From NCBI GenBank assembly GCA_001179505.1, contig CDMY01000226.1, positions 1-64,000 on the forward strand: a stretch of 64,000 nt of DNA, given 5' to 3'. Made by a program: the position numbers and the translations under genes. The notes under the pieces were generated by a model that saw nothing but the letters and a program-made list of their open reading frames with translations, ran no database searches and was not told the origin of the DNA. Shown here piece by piece: positions 25,375 through 55,880 of this stretch. The DNA is from Vitrella brassicaformis CCMP3155. Its lineage: Eukaryota > Protista > Chromerida. Each line of letters opens with the position of its first letter. Within the stretch, counting starts at the first letter, position 1.

Positions 25375-25674
25375 NNNNNNNNNNNNNNNNNNNNNNNNNN
25401 NNNNNNNNNNNNNNNNNNNNNNNNNNNNNNNNNNNNNNNNNNNNNNNNNNNNNNNNNNNNNNNNNNNNNNNNNNNNNNNNNNNNNNNNNNNNNNNNNNNN
25501 NNNNNNNNNNNNNNNNNNNNNNNNNNNNNNNNNNNNNNNNNNNNNNNNNNNNNNNNNNNNNNNNNNNNNNNNNNNNNNNNNNNNNNNNNNNNNNNNNNNN
25601 NNNNNNNNNNNNNNNNNNNNNNNNNNNNNNNNNNNNNNNNNNNNNNNNNNNNNNNNNNNNNNNNNNNNNNNNNN
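25375..25674. other. Assembly gap (300 N)
   Basis: N run flanked by poly-C on both sides. Confidence 1.
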
Positions 25675-26603: not shown

Positions 26604-26903
26604 NNNNNNNNNNNNNNNNNNNNNNNNNNNNNNNNNNNNNNNNNNNNNNNNNNNNNNNNNNNNNNNNNNNNNNNNNNNNNNNNNNNNNNNNNNNNNNNNN
26701 NNNNNNNNNNNNNNNNNNNNNNNNNNNNNNNNNNNNNNNNNNNNNNNNNNNNNNNNNNNNNNNNNNNNNNNNNNNNNNNNNNNNNNNNNNNNNNNNNNNN
26801 NNNNNNNNNNNNNNNNNNNNNNNNNNNNNNNNNNNNNNNNNNNNNNNNNNNNNNNNNNNNNNNNNNNNNNNNNNNNNNNNNNNNNNNNNNNNNNNNNNNN
26901 NNN
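26604..26903. other. Assembly gap (300 N)
   Basis: N run followed by a long poly-C. Confidence 1.
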
Positions 26904-28092: not shown

Positions 28093-28392
28093 NNNNNNNN
28101 NNNNNNNNNNNNNNNNNNNNNNNNNNNNNNNNNNNNNNNNNNNNNNNNNNNNNNNNNNNNNNNNNNNNNNNNNNNNNNNNNNNNNNNNNNNNNNNNNNNN
28201 NNNNNNNNNNNNNNNNNNNNNNNNNNNNNNNNNNNNNNNNNNNNNNNNNNNNNNNNNNNNNNNNNNNNNNNNNNNNNNNNNNNNNNNNNNNNNNNNNNNN
28301 NNNNNNNNNNNNNNNNNNNNNNNNNNNNNNNNNNNNNNNNNNNNNNNNNNNNNNNNNNNNNNNNNNNNNNNNNNNNNNNNNNNNNNNNNNNN
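28093..28392. other. Assembly gap (300 N)
   Basis: N run between (TC)n and poly-C. Confidence 1.
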
Positions 28393-33408: not shown

Positions 33409-33708
33409 NNNNNNNNNNNNNNNNNNNNNNNNNNNNNNNNNNNNNNNNNNNNNNNNNNNNNNNNNNNNNNNNNNNNNNNNNNNNNNNNNNNNNNNNNNNN
33501 NNNNNNNNNNNNNNNNNNNNNNNNNNNNNNNNNNNNNNNNNNNNNNNNNNNNNNNNNNNNNNNNNNNNNNNNNNNNNNNNNNNNNNNNNNNNNNNNNNNN
33601 NNNNNNNNNNNNNNNNNNNNNNNNNNNNNNNNNNNNNNNNNNNNNNNNNNNNNNNNNNNNNNNNNNNNNNNNNNNNNNNNNNNNNNNNNNNNNNNNNNNN
33701 NNNNNNNN
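33409..33708. other. Assembly gap (300 N)
   Basis: N run flanked by C-rich tracts. Confidence 1.
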
Positions 33709-43928: not shown

Positions 43929-44228
43929 NNNNNNNNNNNNNNNNNNNNNNNNNNNNNNNNNNNNNNNNNNNNNNNNNNNNNNNNNNNNNNNNNNNNNNNN
44001 NNNNNNNNNNNNNNNNNNNNNNNNNNNNNNNNNNNNNNNNNNNNNNNNNNNNNNNNNNNNNNNNNNNNNNNNNNNNNNNNNNNNNNNNNNNNNNNNNNNN
44101 NNNNNNNNNNNNNNNNNNNNNNNNNNNNNNNNNNNNNNNNNNNNNNNNNNNNNNNNNNNNNNNNNNNNNNNNNNNNNNNNNNNNNNNNNNNNNNNNNNNN
44201 NNNNNNNNNNNNNNNNNNNNNNNNNNNN
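43929..44228. other. Assembly gap (300 N)
   Basis: N run. Confidence 1.
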
Positions 44229-44937: not shown

Positions 44938-47900
44938 ATGGGGAGATCTGCTCTCGCGTATGTGTTCCTGGTGGTGGTGCTGGCATGGTGCGGGTGTGGC
45001 GTCCATGCGCAGGGGTCATTCGAGCCTGACTTCGAGGTGTTGTCTTTTCTCCCCGACAACGAGGACCGCCGACTGACAGCCAAGCAAGCCATTGTTGTCG
45101 TCTTCAATCTGCCGGTATGCTATGCACGGTGTGGAGATTCCCATTCAGGTGTCCATGTCCACGTGTGTTGGTGTGTGTGTGTGTGCGTGTAGGTGATCCC
45201 GCTGGGTGCCGACTACATCACAGACGACTTCACATCACCGTTCAACATCACCGCCAACAACGCCCTCGGCAAGATACCGGGCACCACCTACTGGGTCACC
45301 ACATCCATCGCACGATTCGACCCGGCCGTCGACTGGCCGAGCGACCTCGAGGTCACCGTCAAGATCAACCGGGACCTCACTAGCGTCAGCGGCAAGGCGC
45401 TGGTCGACTCACCTGCATTTGATGAAGCATCGCTGGCAAGAGTCTACAAGACCGACACTCAAAGCCTGTCTGTTGGGGTGAGCCGACACATCACACCAAC
45501 CAATAAAGAGCTTGCATGACACCTCTCTCTCTGTTGTCTGTTGAACCTCTGCTCGATCAGACTGTGCGGTCCAATCGCACTCTGGAGCTGACTGGCGGGC
45601 TGTGGGCCTCCAATGTCGACAAGTGGATCGATGACGCAGACGAGGTCCCCCCGGACAGCGAGATTCGGGTGACTTTCACATCACCCGTCACCCTTAAGCA
45701 GCTGCAGACCCTCGACCCCTCCACCAACCAGTATCCCATCCGCATCGTCAATCGCAAGACCGCATCGGACATGCTGCCAGCCGACGCCTTCACCGTGGCC
45801 AAGTGCCGTCAGCGACCGACGATGCCCGTGGAGCCGCCGGGCGGGTGGCTCATGGCTGGCGGGGTCACTGCTGCAGAGGTGGAGAAACACGGGCTTAACG
45901 GGACCACCAAGTGTGTGGAGCTGCGGCTGAAGAGTGGGGAGGGATCCAGTGGTGTTTTGAAGAGCGGGGAGGTGTACGAGGTGGTGCTGCAGCCTGGCAA
46001 GGCCTACTCACCGCTGAGTGGACCATATACGAAGAGGAACGAGAGCGGGGGGAGCGACAAACCGGTCGGTCAGCACGGCCTGCACTGCATCCCACACACG
46101 CAAACCACCATTCATTAACCCCGTTGAGTCGTCGGTCGGTCTGTCCTTGTCTGTCTCTGCTGTCTGTCTTTGTGTGCGTTGGTCGACTGCTCAGCTAGTG
46201 ACGGGTCTCCGCCCGTTTCGCTTCCAAGCCCGCAGGCGCTCGGTGTCAGTAGGGTCTGATCGGCTCACACTGTGGGTGCGCCACGGCCTCCCGCCCGCCA
46301 TCACGGCAGACATCCTCGCCAAGCAGATCATTGTCACGCCAGCCGTCGGCGGGCTCAATGTCTCCCTCGACAATAACGCCACCGTCCGTCTCACCGGCGA
46401 GTTCATCCCCTCCACCTCCTACACGGTCGCCGTCGCAGCCAGCCGGAGCATCATCGACGGCTGGGGTCTGCCCCTCGAGAGCTCCAGCATCCCCTTCAAG
46501 ACGAGGGCCGGCTCAGAGATCGTCGAGATGGCGGATTCCTATGAGCCCCTGTTCTTTCCAGTGGTGCCGGGAGTCGACGGATCGGGTGACGATTTCACAT
46601 GGTCGGTCATCTATCGGCCACAGCACGGTGGGGGTGGCGATGCCCGTGCGGCGCCGACGGTCCGGTCTGCCGCGCTGTATCGCATCCCTGCTCAAGAGAG
46701 CGACATTGGTGCTTTCCTGATCAAGGCATTCAGGCCGTCGGACGCACCCACCACCGAGTAAGAGAACGGGGGCAGACCAGGCCACACACACTTTCCCATC
46801 ATCCCCTTGCTACGGTCTCATCTGTGTGTGTGTGTGTGTGTATGGTCGATCAGCTCGGGCTATCTGGCGGCAGACATCAGCGAGCTGTCCGAGTCGCTGT
46901 CCCCCGCCCCGGGCATGCCCCTTCTCGCCAACGCCACTCTGGCCCCAACCGCGCCCTCACTCTACGTCGCAGAACTCCGCTACGAAATGTGCCACACGGC
47001 CGGCAACGGGCAGAACTGCTACCCCCGCATAGAGTCCGCTCTGGTCAACCTGGCCACGGCCGCAGTGACGGTAGCGGTGTCCCAGAGGGACAAGAAGGGC
47101 ATGACGAGCAGGGTGACCGCCAGCGCATCGGGGCTGGCCGACGGGCTGCCCCTCGAGGGCGTCAGGATAACTGCATGGGAGCTGAGGACCAGGCGAGAGG
47201 GTAAGCGGAGACATACATGAGAAGAACAGGGGCCATGTGCACTCATTCATTCATCCTTCCATGTGTGTGTGTGTGTGTGTATGTGTGTGTATGGGTGCAG
47301 TCACTGCGGTGTCGTTGGGTTTCGGTCTGACTGAGGAGGATGGCGTGGCATCCTTCGACATCACCCCCCAGGAGCCCTGGAGCACCGTGGTGGTCGTGCT
47401 GCAGTCAGCCGATGACACGGATGCATCACAGCCGTCCTTCGCCGTCACTGGACCCATATCACGAGGCCACAGGCACTACCCCCAAGCTGCCGAGCAGAAC
47501 GCTGAGGATGCGGCGGAAGATGCCCTCTCCAGCAGCGACGTGCAGGCCACCTGGACCACAGACAGGTGAACACTCACTCACACCAGCAGCAGCACAGGCG
47601 TTGCACTCTCTCTCTCTCTCTCTGTGTCTGTGTCTGTGTCTCCCAGGGGCATCTACAAGCCGACCGACACGATAGCGATTCATGGTTTCGTGGCAGCGAC
47701 GGTTGAGAGGTGCGGCCGGGAGGTGACGACGGGCACAGGCTGCCCTCTTGGTGACGTCAATGAGAGCGCGGCTGAGTGGGTCGTGGCGATGGCCTGGAAG
47801 TGGGCTGAGAATACGTGTGATCTGGCTGTCGCGCCCATCGACAGGATCGGAGCCTTCAACCTCACCGTAGGCAGCAGCTTACCTCCACACACTGAGGACG

Positions 47901-50900
47901 CACAAACAACACGCGTCAAATCCTCGTTCTCTGTCTCCTGGATCATGATATCAATTAGGTGGAGGTGTCACCTGTTGCCACGTACGGCCCTCTCGCCACC
48001 CCTCAGCTGCTGGTCGGCCCCCCAGGCATCCTCCAGGGCGCTTCATGCACACAGGTCGGCGCCGACTGCCCCGTCGGCCAGTTCTGCGACCCCGTCATCA
48101 CCCCGCAGACCAAGGGGCCAAGCACCTTGCTCATCTCTGACCCCCGGCCGCCATCGGTCGTCATGACGGTCGATGTGGCGCCCGTCTGGGTGCCCAAGAC
48201 GCTGCTGAAGGTCGAGGGGAAGGTGGAGACCTACACTGGGGTGCCGCTGCAGCAGACGGCCGTGATGATCGAGGTCGACGTCAACCCCAAGGTCAAGATC
48301 AACGGCACCGACGGGACATTCTTTGCGTTCGTCAGTGAGACGCAGGAGACGCAGTGCTTCCCCGAGAAGAATCTCATGAAGATCACCAGCAACATCGTGA
48401 CCGACGGGAAGGGGGAGTTCGCCGTGGACCTGACGATTGATCCTAATGACGAGTATGGCCGCATCACGCTGTCGCTGCTGGACCAGCTGCGGATGAAGGT
48501 GACGACCCGCGGTGTCACCGGGGAGTTGATCGAGGAGACCGACAACATCGTGACGGCTTACATGGGATACTTCATCAAAGACATCAAGGTGGATCCCTCT
48601 CCCCCACTCCCCGGCCGTCCCTTCCGCCCAGCCGTCTCCACCGCCCCGCACCCGGACGTCACCCCCGCTACGCCACCGGCGGGCAGCAGCACCACCCTAT
48701 GGCTGTTTGAGGCCAAACACGACATCAAGCCAGACATCGAGCCATACCCCTGGTACCGGATGATGGACGACCGGCCCACGGTGCCTGCCGACTGCCGCGA
48801 GTACATTCGCTACGAGGATGGTGAGAACAGCCTCGTTTCGCCAGGCAAGATGGAGGCCACGAGCAACTTCACGCTCAAGAAGACGTGCAGCGATGTCGGT
48901 GGTGGTTTTGGTGCTGACGACGAGTGCGTGCTGACGATGGACACCTTGGCGCACTACCTGGTCGTGGCGCAGCTGGTGGTCCCCACCGTCTCATCGGCCG
49001 GCCACTTCGCCCAGTGCACCGTCATCGGCAGCACAGAGAAGGAGTGGCAGGAGTCGCCCCTCGACTCATGGAGCCCGAGCGACATCGCCGCCAAGTTCTC
49101 CAAGCCGTCCTACGCTCCCGATGAGGACATACAGCTGTCGTTCCGCAACCCGTTCGCGTCAGCAGCCAGCGCCATCCTGTTCTGGGGCATGGGCAAGTGG
49201 AAGCGCGTGGCCGACATCGGTGCAGACGAGCTGGCGACCGTCACGATAGGTCCCATGGGAGCCGACTGCCTCGAGACGTGTGACGTGGCCATCGTGCTTG
49301 CCGCCCCCATCACAAGCGACATTCAGCTGGACCCCTCGCCGCCCACGGCTGTGCTGCTACCTTCCTGGGGCCCGCAGTACGTCAAGACGACTGTTTCTGT
49401 GAAGATTGAAGGGGCCAACAATGAGCTGGCGGGGGTGAATGTGACTCTGGATCGGGAGAGCTATTCCCCCGGGCAGGAGGTGACGGTTGACATCAGTGCC
49501 GAGATGAAGGGTGAGGGCTCTGCTGCCGATGGGGTGGTTGGCGTGCTGGTGGTGGATAAGGCGCTGCTGGACATCCACCCCCACCCCCTGATGAAGCCCT
49601 CTGAGGGCTTCGTGCCGAGCAAGGCGGACCCTTTGTCAACAGTGTACGCGTCGTATAAGGGGCTGGTGTCTCGCCAGGCCTACAACACGGGACGAGACAT
49701 CCTCATGCGACGAATGGCCATGGTGAGTGAAAGGGTCGGTGGGGCCACACACTCAGACAGACTCACCACCACACTACACCAAGCTCTCTCTCTCTCTCTC
49801 TCTCTGTCTGTGCGTGTCTGTGTCTGTGTTTGCGTGTGACCAGAGCCCCTGGATCGAGCCCAGCTGGCCCTCCCGGCCGGACGTCTCCGACTTGGACAAG
49901 ACAGACGACGAGTACCTGGATAGATTCCTCGCTCAGCTCACCAATTTCCCCTCTGACTTCCTCTATCCCACCCCAACATCCTTCTACCAGCCACGCACCG
50001 AGAGGGCAGCACACTGGAAGGCCCGAATGGGCGGAGGGGGGCCGGTCAACGGCGTTGAGCCCGTCGCGTACGCGGCGCCGCCCAGTGGTTTTGCTCCTAC
50101 TTCTGTGTCACGGGAAGCGGACGATGGAGGCGCAGGCGCGTCCGAGGAGATTCTGGCGTCTGCAGTGGGGGCGGCCAAGACCATTCGAGAGGAGTTTGCC
50201 ACGCTGGTGGCTTTCAAGGTGGCCCCGTTGGATGGCCTGAGGGGACAGGTGCGGTTCAAGCTCCCCGACAACACTGGTAGGCTGGCTGCATGACACACAC
50301 TCATGGACCATGCATTCATAGGTTGATTGATTGCTGTCTGTGGGTGGGTGGGCTGGATTGGTCATGTCAGGCACGTTCGTGGTGCGGACCTTTGTGGTTG
50401 GCAGCAGGATGGGCCCTGACGACAAGCATGAGCTGCAGTGGGGCTCCCAGGAGACCGAGCTGCAGAGCGCCATCGCGGTCAGTTTGCGTGTGAACATGGA
50501 GGAGGAATGTGGCTGCCATGGCACCCACCCACCCACCCATCCGTGTTTTCGTGTGTGGTGTGTATGCAGGTGTCTCTGAAGCCGTACCTTCCCCGCTTCA
50601 TGCGTGTGGGCGACATGGCCAGCTTCGGAGCCGTCCTCACTGTCGATCCACAACAGGTATGTATGACGCACAGATACATACCAGACATACGTGTGTTGTG
50701 TGAGCGCATCCATCCATCCATCCGTCCATCCGTCCATTCGTTAGGTTGACGTGGGCTACGACGTCCGCCTGGAGGGTGTGGAGGGCATCACATTCCTCGG
50801 CACCGAGGAGGACAAACTGAACAGACTGAGGGTGAGGGCATTGCAATGAACAACACCTCACCCCCCCGGCGTCACACAGCAAACAAACAACACAATCATT

Positions 50901-53353
50901 TGATTGCCGTTTTTGCTCTTTCAGCCCACCCGCAGCACCACTCGTGTGACATGGCGCTTCAAAGCCGAGGCCCTCGGCACCGCACGCGTCACCATGAGCG
51001 TCAGGCACATCCAGACAAACCAGCTCCTGGACCAGGTCGAGGACACGTTCGAGGTCCTCCCACCCCAGCAGAAAATCACCATGGGCACCACAATCGCCAT
51101 CTCGCCTGCCGCATTCAACGAAGAGGGGCGCAACGTGCTCATCGAGGAAGGCCTCAGCCTGCCCGACCTGCTGGCCGGAGTGGGCGGGGTCAATGTCACC
51201 GCGTCGGTGGGGCACTCCGGGGCCATTCTCAGCGTGACCAACACGCTGAGCAGCGGGGCGTTTGGGGGCGGCAAGGACAAAGACATTGAGCCGTATGGCG
51301 GTGCGCTGCTGGCTGTGGTGTTCAATCGGTGGATGCTGCGGTCGCAGTACGGTGTGAGTGAGGGCATGGAGGGCATCGACGCAGCCATGGACATCGTCAC
51401 GGAAAAGATTGAGGAGTACATCTCGCCTAAAAACAGAAAACTTGGCTTCCTGCCGCGGCCATGGTGAGTGGTGTGGGTCGGGCAGACAGACACACAGACA
51501 GAACGAGCAAAAGGCGTACACTCACTCTTCGTGGTTGATGCACGTGTGCATGTGTGTGTGTTCAGGTCGACATACACGCAATGGTCCCGCCCCTATGCAT
51601 CCCTGAACCTGCAGCTGACGGCAACGGCCATCCTCGTCGGTCAGGAAGCCGAGTTCGCCCCCCTGGTTGAGCGGGAGAGTCTCTTCAAGGACCGCATCAA
51701 GGACAAGCTGAGGGTGGGTAATCACATGACATGAAACACTGGCAGGCACAGTGAGTGGCACTGCACTGATGGCATCCGTCCGTCGTGTCTGTCTCCCGCT
51801 GTGTGTGACCGACCATGTGTGCAGAAAGAGGTGTATGAGTGGCAGGAGGCCAAGAGGAAATCTGGTTCCAGGTCGACGTTCATCGAGTGGGTCGGCGTCT
51901 CCACCGTGGCGCTCCTCCGCTACGTGCTCGGGTCGACCTATGACTTCAACCTGCCACCGGGTGTGGACGGCGCTGACCTCTCCTTCAAGACGCTCCTGAC
52001 TCAAGTGGCCAAGGAGGAGTACGCCTTCACATCTGCGCGATACTGGGTAGGCGGGGCGGGCTTGGCTGGTGGGCTGGCTGGCTGCACGCACCGATCCATC
52101 CACGAGTGGGTTTGTTACCTACCGGCCGTCTGTCTCTGTGTGATGTGCATGCATTAATGTGTCTGACAGGCTGTGTTGACTCAGCTGAAGGAGGGCCTGA
52201 CGAGCTCCCTGGCCGCCCCCACAATGGCGGCCGCCCGCGACAACTTCCGCATCCAGGGCCCCACAGGCTATGTCGCCAACAGCAAGGGCGGCGACTACCC
52301 TGCCAGCGACATCGAACAGGTGCGTAGTCAGCCCACCAATCCATCATTCCCATGCACATACTTGTCTGTCTGATTGGGTGTCTCCCCTTGGTTCATTGCT
52401 GTCAGGGTTTGGTGCTGCTGCTGTGGAGCTATGACAAGGAGTTTGCCACGCATCAGTTCGCTGCCCGCGTGGGTCTGTTTCTCGCGCAGGGCGGGTCGTC
52501 GGGCCTCTCGCCATGGACCAGGGGGCTGTCGCCGTTCGCCGCCATTTGGGGGGCCAAGGGCATGCGGCGACTCGACGGAGCCACCCAATCCGCCGACCCT
52601 AACCTGACACTTGAGGTGGGGAGAAGCCACAAGAGACATCCATCCTCCCTTGGCTGTCTGATCCGACCGTTTGTTTACGGATGTTTGGGTGGAATTTGAT
52701 GTAGGTTTCTTCCGGTGCAGCGTCCCTTATAAACACCACTTTCACCAAGGCCGCCCCCGGCCCTGTCTCAGACACTCTGCCATGGACGAGCGAGCAGCTT
52801 GACCTCACCGGCCAGCCGCCCAAGATCACCTTCGACGCCGCCGGCACCGGCTCCGTCTTCACCTCTCTCTCCATCGACTTCGTGGCCGCCTCACCGGCGT
52901 CCTACCCCACTTACAAGGGCATCCTCGTACAGAAGCGGCTGCTCCGCCACGACAGCGTCAAGGGCTGCACGGGGGAGCATATCAACGCCACAACCAGCGG
53001 GCAGGTCGTGTGTGTGGTCGCGTCTGTGACCGTCAAGGACTACATGAATGACGTCGAGATCGCCGACGAGCTGCCCGCCGGGCTGGAGGCTTTCGACCCC
53101 CATCTGAAGGGCGATGGCGGCCCGCCCGGCGTGATGCCTTTGCCCCGCCGCAGTGGGGGAGGGGCGGTGGATGGCAGCTTCTGGAGCTCGCTGTTCAGCT
53201 ATCGGTGGTTCCCCATGTGTTCACAGCAGACGATGCGGTCGAGGGTGCTCTTCTCGTGCAGCGCCCTGCACCCCGGCGAACACACATTCACATATCAAGC
53301 ACTGGTGCGTGTGCCTCCATCCGTGTGGTGTTGTTGGTTGCTGTTGTATGTCA

Positions 53354-53387
<34 letters not shown>

Positions 53388-54379
53388 TGGCATAGGCGAA
53401 TGTCGAGGGTCTGTATGTGCTGCCGCCGATCCACTCGTTCGTGAGCTCTGCCCGTGAGGTCATGGGGCTGTCGGCCGCCAGCTACATGGCCGTCCAGTCA
53501 GACAGCGACACACCGGAGACCGACTACACTGACATGCTGCTACCTATCCAGGTGACCCACCAACACACATACACAACACACATACCCACGGGCACATTCA
53601 CTCTGTGTTTGTGTGTGTGCGCGCAGGTGTCTGGTCGGTCGTTTGTGTTGGCCCCCCAGTCGTGTCCGGAGTGCCCTGTGGGTAGTTCCGGGTGTGACGT
53701 GTCCCGCGGGGTGTGTCTGTGCATGGACGTAGCTCACGGGAGGGAGGTTGACTGCGATTCACTCGACGTGCAGGTGAGATGATAGATAGAACGGGAGGGC
53801 CCTAGATAACTACTGGGTAGTTTGCTACGCAGCAGGCAGGGAGGGTAGTCCATGGAAGAGAGTGCTGTGGTCTGTGTGGTCCGATTATGCCGCTGTGGTG
53901 TGGCTGGCTCAGTAGTGAGTTGTGTACATATATATGTACGTGTGTATGTCCGTGTGTGTGTGTGTGTGTGTGTGTGGCGACCGACAAGAAGACACGTGTA
54001 TGTTTGTTGAGCCGGCCAGTCCCTGAAGAAATGATTGGTCTCTCTCCTGTCAATCTCTCCCTCTCCTTGCTTGCTGCAGTCACCTGTGGACCCCACGGCA
54101 AATGGCAGCGAGCCTCCCACCTTCCTTACCAGCTCTACCGGCTCAACGGTACACAGACAGCCACACAATCGCAGCCCCCTCACCACCCGTCTGTCTATCT
54201 GTGTGTTGTGTTGTGCACACATCCATGGCGGTCAGGGTCCCACTCTAGCGCGAGCGGAGAAATCCGGCGGGGGCACCACCTCGGGGGCGTCATCAGGGTG
54301 GACTCCGTCGAGGACCGTCCTGCTCTTCTCACTCGTGTGGCTCCTGCAGGGGGGATGGGCTGCACGGCGGGACGAATGA
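44938..54379 (+). CDS. Large secreted bacterial-type alpha-2-macroglobulin family protein (~20 introns), thioester-less, with a hydrophobic C-terminal tail
   Basis: Signal peptide; Ig-like AIVVVFNLP and GEFIPSTSYTVAV..DGWGLPL; MG2 GIYKPTDTIAIHGFV; VTLDRESYSPGQEVTVDI; GVLVVDKALL; TIREEFATL; VRFKLPDNTG|TFVVRTFV; LKPYLPRFMRVGD; EPYGGALL; GQVVCVVASV..IADELPAGLEAFDP; LHPGEHTFTYQAL|ANVEGLYVLPP. These motifs occur in the order of bacterial A2M proteins. Confidence 0.88.
46804..46857 (+). repeat. Intron 3' segment shared with 56008-56059, copy A (in A2M intron 46758-46853)
   Basis: CCCTTGCTACGGTCTCATC(TG)nTATGGTCGATCAG|CTCG. Confidence 0.85.
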
Positions 54380-55880
54380 GGCCAGGCGGCTGGTGGGGCG
54401 GGAGACAGACACGTGACGTACGCGGTGATCTGATCAATCGTCGTTTTTTCCCGTCTTTTTCTGAATCGATGGATGAAGGGGTCAGGTGGGGTGGCTGACT
54501 GACCTGCGTGGTGGCTGGGCTGCAAGCCGTCGCTGGATGGATGGATGTGTAATGTACATAACTAACCTACACACATACGTACGGTTACACTGGTCTGTCT
54601 CCCGTGCTGTGTGCGGGTTCGCGCACCTGTGTTTGTTGAATAGCCTTCCCTCCCTCCCTCCCTCCCTCACTCACTCACTCCCAGACAGACAGACAGACAG
54701 ACACAAGCAATCCAGTTTGTGTGACTGAGTCACACACGTTCTTTCGTGGTTTGTTTATTTTCCTCTTTCCCTGTCAAATCAAGTCAAGCCAAGTCTATCG
54801 GAAGGAAGAAGGACCAAAAGAGACCCAAGAGATGAGAAGAGAAGATCGAAAGTATCTTTCTTGATGTTTTTTGATGCGCCGTTCGTTCATTCGTTCGTTC
54901 ATGGTGTGGTGTGTGTATTTGTTTGTTGGCGCGCGTGGGTGTGGGGTGGAGGGGGGGGGGAGGCGACGGACCGAGGAAGCAAGTAGGTGGGCGGAGGGGG
55001 CGTGGGAGTAGCCCGAGGCAGCAACGATCGACGCCACAGACCGATAGAGAGACACGCAGAGAGAGAGGGGGAGCTAGTTGCTCAGGCAGACTAGGTGCGC
55101 CGGTGTGTGTTGTGTGTGTCCGTGTGTGTGGCCGCGTGTGTGTCCGTGTGTGTGTGTGTGTTGGGCTGCCTGTCGCATCGTCGTCTCTCCCTCTGTGTTA
55201 ACACAGACAGACAGACAGTCTGATGCTTTGCTGTGGTGTGTGTGGCCTACAAAGCGGCCAGGCCCTCTCACCGGAGCTCTGATCAATGATCTGTCAGTCT
55301 GTCTGTCTGTCTGTCTGTTGCGACGAGGGAGAGAGGACTCTTTTGGTGGATTTCGACCGTAGTGCGTTGAATGCGTGGCAGTCCAAGTAATATGTGTGTG
55401 TGTTGTTCCCAGTACTTACTGACTGACACCGCTTACCTAACAGAGACACCAACCACCCCCACACCAAGGACGGGACGAGACACACAAACGGATGTCGAGC
55501 TTCTGAAGCTGAATCAAGCGGCCAACGAATACGAAATGAATGACACGCGCATACAGAAACATTCGTCCTGGTCGACTTTGTGCGCAGCTTAAGAAACAAG
55601 GAACGATCCGCATGCATGCCATCGGGGGGGGCGTGGGGGCCAACACGAAGGGTTCAAGTTGAAGTTCGGGACTCCGAAGCTTGCTGAGCGTGGCACGCTC
55701 TTACGAAACAAAGTGTATATCCGTCCGTTTGTCCGTAATTGGGGCCAAGCCAGCACTTCCTTCGGTTCCCTGGGTCGCGCGAGCTTGGCGGCTTTGCATG
55801 CATTGCGAAACGCACGGGCGAACGCGTAGCGAGTCCCGCCAGCCCGACGGAGGAGGGAAATTTCATTGAAGTGAGGGGCG

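Follow-up and report, generated by a model that had tools for sequence, protein, structure and literature searches.

A window of 64,000 nucleotides from the genome of the chromerid alga Vitrella brassicaformis CCMP3155 (assembly GCA_001179505.1, contig CDMY01000226.1, positions 1 to 64,000) was analysed around one intron-rich gene on its forward strand. Almost certainly, this locus encodes a protein of the alpha-2-macroglobulin (A2M) superfamily with a bacterial-type order of domains. The genomic region contains many short stop-free stretches on the forward strand, which were joined at GT-AG sites into a single model. The model begins with the ATG at 44938 and ends with the stop codon at 54377-54379; its limits are identical to those given in an earlier note on the locus, which was made from the sequence alone. 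The coding sequence of 7224 nucleotides has no internal stops, and all introns, 75-306 nucleotides long, have GT-AG borders. The GC content of the gene is about 60%, the same as in its flanks. The features of the gene and its predicted protein are collected in Table 1.

Table 1. Features of the Vitrella macroglobulin gene and of its predicted protein (window coordinates; aa, amino acids)
Feature	Position	Strand	Basis or remark
Whole coding region, 22 exons and 21 GT-AG introns, 2407-aa protein	44938..54379	+	hand-built gene model
Exons 1-8	44938-45114, 45193-45477, 45561-46064, 46195-46757, 46854-47200, 47301-47565, 47647-47866, 47959-49722	+	
Exons 9-15	49844-50276, 50371-50477, 50570-50656, 50745-50831, 50925-51463, 51566-51713, 51825-52046	+	
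Exons 16-22	52170-52319, 52406-52615, 52705-53304, 53396-53551, 53627-53773, 54080-54148, 54236-54379	+	
Candidate signal peptide, aa 1-24, hydrophobic core, VHA|QG cleavage-type site	44938..45009	+	inspection and hydropathy
Weak Big_5 (bacterial Ig-like) match, exon 4	46354..46500	+	Pfam E 0.026, 15.7 bits, below cut-off 23.6
DRGIYKPTD, MG2-type motif	47561-47668	+	spans intron 6
Exon 8 (588 aa), MG beta-sandwich array with A2M bait-region domain at its end	47959..49722	+	Pfam, predicted fold
A2M_BRD	49093-49572	+	Pfam E 9.5e-8, 32.9 bits, cut-off 22.7
Variable, low-complexity insert resembling a bait, aa 1415-1486, just before TIREEF	49961..50176	+	family alignment
A2M domain (TIREEF ... KLPDNTG ... 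LPRFMRVGD), exons 9-11	50180..50656	+	BLAST, family profile
TIREEF	50180-50197	+	
KLPDNTG	50258-50372	+	spans intron 9
LPRFMRVGD	50588-50614	+	
Degenerate thioester domain, TED-like and helical, aa about 1705-2060, exons 13-18	51198..52776	+	hhalign, AlphaFold2 model of orthologue
Former thioester site, PYG-GALL replacing PYG-CxEQ	51291..51311	+	77-row alignment, hhalign
MG10, bacterial-type C-terminal domain (DELPAGLE ... TMRSRV ... HTFTY ... YVLPP ... EVMG), exons 18-19	52918..53467	+	Pfam bMG10
DELPAGLE	53065-53088	+	
HTFTY	53281-53295	+	
YVLPP	53414-53428	+	
EVMG	53456-53467	+	
Exon 20, six-cysteine EGF-like module after MG10	53627..53773	+	cysteine pattern only
Hydrophobic segment at the C-terminus, aa 2387-2403, with RRDE and stop after it	54314..54364	+	hydropathy scan

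The spliced model can be aligned end to end with a protein of 2462 amino acids from Digyalum oweni (model residues 28-2320, E 5e-144) and, over long stretches, with about 25 further proteins. Its splicing was examined by comparing one stretch of 5951 nucleotides (48500-54450) with four public sequencing runs, here X1 to X4. Contigs from X1 and X2, which belong to one study, lack all 14 modelled introns between 49723 and 54235, and the GT..AG borders are exact. Thus, in its 3' two thirds, the gene is transcribed and spliced as modelled. The same contigs settle the nature of the last intron, a stretch of 87 nucleotides that is in frame and free of stops. The earlier note's estimate of about 20 spliceosomal introns agrees well with the 21 of the model. 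Contigs from X3 and X4, which contain DNA and come from other studies, are collinear with the window and retain the introns. An apparent joint of 942 nucleotides in these DNA runs, from 50536 to 51479, was rejected as spurious: one of its sides is 21 nucleotides long, and it sits at repeats.

Runs of (GT)n, (CT)n and (CA)n resembling microsatellites are found directly before the acceptor AG in many introns of the gene (e.g. 45165-45190, 46825-46845, 47262-47295, 49786-49835, 53345-53390). DNA contigs of the public runs end at several of these intron-end repeats, and also near 51500-51560 and 53560-53620; these breaks point to short repeats dispersed within the introns. The assembly has five gaps of exactly 300 N (25375-25674, 26604-26903, 28093-28392, 33409-33708, 43929-44228). 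Since only about 700 bp separate the last of them from the start codon downstream, the promoter and 5' untranslated region are incomplete.

A HMMER scan of 1.84 billion representative proteins with exon 8 produced only 66 proteins. The product of the Vitrella gene is not itself among these representatives, and the closest match has 32% identity. All named matches are eukaryotic, and several come from genome assemblies, besides those from transcriptomes. Relatives were observed in the chromerid Chromera velia (Cvel_24671), the squirmid D. oweni, the dinoflagellates Polarella, Symbiodinium, Cladocopium and Gymnodinium, the diatom Odontella, the Amoebozoa Arcella, Pyxidicula, Copromyxa, Clydonella, Cavostelium and Tieghemostelium, the ichthyosporean Ichthyophonus, the diplonemid Lacrimia, the green alga Tetradesmus, and a streptophyte alga (entry labelled Mesen1). 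Some of these proteins carry automatic database labels only, such as 'Bacterial alpha-2-macroglobulin MG10 domain-containing protein', and full-text literature searches found no description of a eukaryotic clade of thioester-less macroglobulins. In BLAST comparisons with bacteria, the Vitrella protein matches only in the blocks of MG10, A2M and the bait-region domain (BRD), at 23-32% identity. The MG10 block is covered by matches to 78 of the 120 bacterial relatives. No bacterial counterpart of the approximately 700 N-terminal residues is detectable by BLAST. In D. oweni the family is represented by ten transcript-derived proteins of 1643-2476 amino acids (P0006 and P0067-P0075) that fall into one cluster at 90%, which suggests several isoforms or recent gene copies.

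All motifs named in the earlier note as typical of the bacterial A2M clade are present in the predicted protein and follow in the order given there. Pfam models were run on the window exons singly, and domains split by introns (A2M, TED) were studied through relatives. In the window, significant matches were obtained for A2M_BRD and, in exon 18, for bMG10 (E 1.1e-9, 39 bits, cut-off 26.2). Among 16 relatives, matches were found to bMG10 in 15, A2M in 12, MG2 in 11, A2M_BRD in ten, Big_5 in seven and bMG3 in two. The N-terminal Ig-like repeats are the least well supported feature of the earlier description: Big_5 is significant in these seven relatives, whereas the Vitrella protein has a single match below the cut-off. 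The A2M domain (PF00207) is covered at model residues 1489-1579 by a BLAST match to the A2M domain of a bacterial relative, and there the family profile aligns with residues 935-1064 of Escherichia coli YfhM. Neither the exons of the window nor the 16 relatives have a Pfam match to A2M_recep or TED_complement. An NCBIfam scan of the raw open reading frame pieces gave no match.

The bacterial character of the protein is also seen in comparisons with solved structures. The profile of the 16 relatives finds E. coli YfhM (also named ECAM) as its best match in the PDB (4.4e-22, four collinear blocks), followed by Salmonella A2M (9e-18), complement C5 (6e-8) and human A2M (1e-3). Searches with single sequences are nearly blind here: exon 13 of the window yielded a chance match, and the full Digyalum protein reached YfhM with an E-value of 0.007. 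An AlphaFold2 model of exon 8, for which 27 relatives supplied the alignment, is almost entirely beta (predicted local distance difference test, pLDDT, 71.9; predicted template modelling score, pTM, 0.61). In a Foldseek comparison of this model with the PDB, the best 50 of 495 matches (E<=0.001) are A2M, C3, C5, TEP and CD109 chains throughout; the C5 and C3 beta chains are best, with top scores of 6e-13 for C5 and 3e-11 for ECAM. Taken together, the sequence profile and the predicted fold show that the protein belongs to the A2M superfamily. The order of its domains is signal peptide, N-terminal Ig-like region, MG domains, bait-region domain, bait insert, A2M, TED-like domain, bMG10 and a eukaryote-specific tail. 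The bMG10 end, the order of the profile scores and the missing animal-type domains agree with the bacterial type proposed in the earlier note.

The region between A2M and MG10 corresponds to the thioester domain (TED). In an alignment of 77 rows, the Vitrella residues E-P-Y-G-G-A-L-L lie on Y-P-Y-G-C-L-E-Q of YfhM, where C is the thioester cysteine position Cys1187. An hhalign comparison of the eukaryotic profile with the bacterial TED profile (probability 98%, E 2.6e-13, 274 columns) pairs identical residues of the thioester site. For the orthologous part of the Digyalum protein, from TED to MG10, AlphaFold2 predicts a helical domain with a beta-sandwich after it (pLDDT 83.7, pTM 0.83), and the best PDB match of this model is the ECAM fragment from MG7 to the C-terminus (4ziu, 2.8e-14), followed by A2ML1 and Salmonella A2M. 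Because the domain is matched at the profile level while the thioester residues are replaced, the TED is, as judged from these comparisons, retained but degenerate.

The loss of the thioester is not a peculiarity of the Vitrella protein. CxEQ is absent from its whole sequence and from all 81 proteins of the eukaryotic match list, whereas 93 of 118 bacterial relatives have it; CxEQ was used for this count, since the bacterial relatives show YxCxEQ variants. The thioester being absent, a classical covalent trap is excluded. Two bacterial relatives of the Big_5 type, P0112 and P0118, have independently lost the CxEQ cysteine, with YDSSEE and FDVTEA at the site. Hence thioester loss has occurred more than once in the A2M superfamily.

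A low-complexity stretch resembling a bait had been noticed immediately upstream of TIREEF, and the family comparison bears this out. It is rich in alanine, glycine, proline and serine, has the lowest conservation and occupancy in that part of the family alignment, and varies in length from 18 to 92 amino acids among full-length relatives. It aligns with residues 942-966 of YfhM, adjoining the YfhM bait segment. In the ECAM structure obtained after elastase cleavage the bait segment Arg923-Leu942 is disordered, and the bait, once cut, binds to the RDDR and EXMY motifs of the last MG domain, MG10; these positions also dock the TED (PMC4498604). At the positions of EXMY and RDDR, the Vitrella MG10 has E-V-M-G and R-x-R. 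By its position and behaviour the insert fits a putative bait.

The ends of the protein appear to be eukaryotic. The signal peptide proposed earlier is retained as a candidate on inspection and a hydropathy scan only, with a maximum Kyte-Doolittle value of 2.93 over 12 residues. The Chromera orthologue starts in the same manner, with a signal peptide followed by FEPDF. Inspection found no canonical lipobox at the N-terminus of the Vitrella protein, whose signal peptide looks eukaryotic. At the other end, a tail of 145 amino acids follows EVMG and contains six cysteines in a candidate epidermal growth factor (EGF)-like module; a teneurin-type EGF domain is matched by Pfam in one relative and in Tetradesmus. 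Then comes a stalk rich in serine, glycine and threonine, and finally the hydrophobic segment. Many relatives (Pyxidicula, Clydonella, Ichthyophonus, Odontella, Arcella) have a clear C-terminal transmembrane helix with a short charged tail; in one relative the protein stops with a hydrophobic tail alone. Since so many relatives end in such a helix, C-terminal anchoring is predicted to be a habit of the family, in contrast to the bacterial proteins, whose lipid anchor is N-terminal. The anchor of the Vitrella protein could be a glycosylphosphatidylinositol (GPI) signal-like sequence or a short transmembrane segment.

One contig of run X2 passes the donor at 53773 unspliced and continues into intron 20 (53774-53924). 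In this form a stop is met two codons past the cysteine-rich exon 20, so that the protein would lack the stalk and the anchor. It could represent a soluble isoform or merely unspliced precursor RNA.

Among characterised macroglobulins, the type II proteins (E. coli YfaS, Pseudomonas aeruginosa MagD) are similar to the Vitrella protein in having no CxEQ and in combining an MG ring, a bait-region domain, A2M, a TED-like domain and a bMG10-type end. Type II is characterised by the absence of the thioester and retention of the bait region (PMC5764988). The Vitrella protein agrees with this definition, in the first respect by the alignment and hhalign, and in the second by the putative insert. However, type II proteins are about 1500 amino acids long, periplasmic and encoded with the mag-operon partners (MagA/B/C/E/F; YfaP/Q/T/A), whereas the Vitrella protein has 2407 amino acids, the additional N-terminal region, the EGF-like module and an anchor of its own at the C-terminus, and no homologue of a mag partner was found in the window.

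Large bacterial A2Ms of the Big_5 type, annotated automatically as 'YfaS', have representatives in Chloroflexota, Acidobacteriota and Myxococcota, among other groups. Of the bacterial proteins, these match the eukaryotic family best, and they resemble it in size (about 1900-2200 amino acids) and in the order of Pfam domains: Big_5, MG2, (bMG3), A2M_BRD, A2M, bMG10. They differ by the frequent presence of CxEQ and by having neither an EGF-like module nor a C-terminal anchor. Type I proteins (YfhM/ECAM and Salmonella A2M; structures 4ziq, 4rtd, 5a42, 4u48) are the best solved relatives and share the position of the bait and the EXMY-type motif of MG10. However, they have a CLEQ thioester, an N-terminal lipoprotein anchor and a neighbouring pbpC gene, none of which is seen in the Vitrella protein or in the window. 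The animal proteins A2M, TEP, C3-C5 and CD109 have the same superfamily fold, as the exon 8 model indicates. CD109 is anchored in the membrane at its C-terminus, and C5 also has no thioester. On the other hand, the animal proteins have a receptor-binding C-terminal domain in place of bMG10, and their profile scores are far below that of YfhM.

The CAGE family was considered as a possible prior description of these proteins. CAGE complex proteins of Tetrahymena and Dictyostelium have about 2300 amino acids, no Pfam domain and helical N-terminal domains, and have been isolated from cilia preparations of Tetrahymena and from the soluble protein of Dictyostelium (bioRxiv 10.1101/2025.09.22.677704). 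Like the Vitrella protein they are of giant size and patchily distributed among protists and Gram-negative bacteria, and some of their beta-sandwich domains resemble the MG domains of A2M. However, the Vitrella protein has A2M_BRD, bMG10 and a signal peptide, and the identification with CAGE was rejected.

The most likely function, to which we assign at best about an even chance, is that of a protease trap which is anchored at the cell surface, is triggered through its bait and, like MagD (type II), holds the protease non-covalently. The bacterial MagD, itself without a thioester, traps proteases non-covalently after cleavage of its bait (PMC5764988). In the mechanism proposed, the Vitrella protein would enter the secretory pathway and stay attached to the cell surface through its C-terminal anchor, where its exposed variable bait insert would be cut by an attacking protease. 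Once cut, the bait segment would be free of its tether, which would allow MG ring, TED-like arm and MG10 to rearrange around the protease. The protease would then be held non-covalently, as has been shown for MagD.

Another possibility, which we consider rather doubtful, is that the A2M scaffold has been re-used for surface adhesion, recognition of particles or partners, or as a structural coat, the insert being merely a linker. The thioester is gone across the whole clade, the TED is highly divergent, the N-terminal region is without a bacterial counterpart by BLAST, and the added EGF-like module and membrane anchors are features typical of receptors or adhesion proteins. Two thioester-less members of the superfamily, complement C5 and insect Mcr, are not protease traps. 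On the other hand, the parts of the conformational switch (BRD, the insert at the bait position, A2M, the TED-like arm, and MG10 with its EXMY-type motif) have been kept by selection across very distant eukaryotes, and the example of MagD demonstrates trapping without a thioester (PMC5764988).

Several observations weigh against a trap of the MagD kind, or against details of the gene that would encode it. The stability of MagD requires its operon partners MagA/B/F, and no homologues of YfaP, YfaQ, YfaT, YfaA or PbpC were found within the 64-kb window; tblastn searches with E. coli YfaP, YfaQ, YfaT and YfaA produced chance matches only (E 0.23 or worse). Literature searches found no biochemical evidence for any member of the eukaryotic clade. 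Pfam TED has no direct match in the window and the identity in the hhalign comparison is 12%, and a TED-like domain of such divergence may have another role. The bait is assigned by position and variability only. The type of the anchor is ambiguous, the hydrophobic stretch before RRDE being 11-17 residues long. As for the gene itself, introns 1-7 have no read coverage and were placed by GT-AG sites, by continuity of the frame and by motifs of the family that bridge exon junctions 1 to 7, such as FN-x-x-VI-x-LG-x-D, GL-x-PF-x-F and TDRG-x-YKP. Finally, the assignment of X1 and X2 to RNA is an automatic guess, though the spliced contigs are hard to explain otherwise.

The origin of the gene was addressed by three maximum-likelihood trees constructed by IQ-TREE (77 rows, LG+G4; 61 rows, LG+C20+F+G4; 61 rows, LG+G4), with SH-aLRT (Shimodaira-Hasegawa-like approximate likelihood ratio test) supports from quick searches. 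Six type II (YfaS/MagD) sequences were supplied, the trees contain no animal A2M, TEP or C3 sequences, and YfhM served as a provisional root. In all three trees the eukaryotic rows, 28-35 in number, form a single clade with SH-aLRT 100 and a long stem that separates it from bacteria. The myzozoan subclade has support 99-100 in all three and joins Vitrella and Chromera (99), with the squirmid and the dinoflagellates as their neighbours, which is consistent with the relationships of the organisms. Rooted on YfhM, the eukaryotic clade nests among bacterial proteins of the Big_5 type. YfaS/MagD is its sister in two of the three trees, with SH-aLRT 99 for a single long branch in the 77-row tree and 81 in the 61-row LG+C20+F+G4 tree, two long branches being joined; in the 61-row LG+G4 tree YfaS/MagD goes with the YfhM root. 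The sister position is thus weak and unstable.

A protein of Gymnodinium smaydae (P0033) lies outside the myzozoan subclade in all three trees, in a second eukaryotic subclade that also contains metagenomic sequences. An old paralogue is one possible explanation, the transcript of prey present in the culture another.

The earlier note had offered two readings of the bacterial-type architecture, horizontal acquisition by a chromerid or an ancient presence in eukaryotes. A recent or lineage-specific transfer from a bacterium to the chromerid ancestor might be suggested by the bacterial type of the C-terminal bMG10 domain and by E. coli YfhM as the best solved relative, and it seems very improbable. 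Bacterial matches are limited to three blocks of low identity, whereas eukaryotic relatives align over the full length; the eukaryotic rows form one clade on a long stem, with Vitrella next to Chromera and then to the squirmid and dinoflagellates; and the gene has 21 spliceosomal introns. Wide distribution, named beforehand as the finding that refutes horizontal transfer, was indeed observed, and to a larger extent than had been named: Myzozoa, diatom, Amoebozoa, ichthyosporean, diplonemid, green and streptophyte algae. As far as these sequence trees can tell, a recent or chromerid-specific acquisition is excluded. The ancient alternative fits better, given the distribution and the single eukaryotic clade. 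In these trees of bacterial and non-animal eukaryotic sequences, with their provisional root, any ancient transfer between bacteria and eukaryotes may have gone in either direction. Bacterial contamination or an assembly artefact, to which the N run upstream of the gene might point, is refuted by the splicing seen in two runs, and the GT-AG introns, the collinear DNA contigs from independent runs and the GC content matching the flanks make its probability negligible.

The locus is probably a vertically inherited nuclear gene of V. brassicaformis for a macroglobulin that may act as a surface-anchored, non-covalent trap of the MagD kind. A further possibility, unlikely in our estimate, is that membrane-anchored thioester-less macroglobulins with bMG10 are an ancient eukaryotic family, as old as the last eukaryotic common ancestor or nearly so, retained by many protist lineages and lost in others. 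If this is true, eukaryotes would have possessed the macroglobulin fold well ahead of animal A2M, TEP and complement, and the old view that bacteria took their A2Ms from animals would have to be revised. Protists would then also possess a surface defence of their own that traps proteases.

Work on macroglobulins that trap proteases has dealt with animals and with Gram-negative bacteria, and how these two groups are related is disputed. The Vitrella gene reveals a third group. It is a clade with members in at least five eukaryotic supergroups, in which a bacterial-type architecture is combined with uniform loss of the thioester and gain of eukaryotic membrane anchors. Some of its members belong to tractable organisms (dictyostelids, diatoms, green algae), in which the working of a thioester-less macroglobulin can be studied. 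The clade bears on the surface defence of free-living protists against foreign proteases and on the deep history of the fold behind complement.

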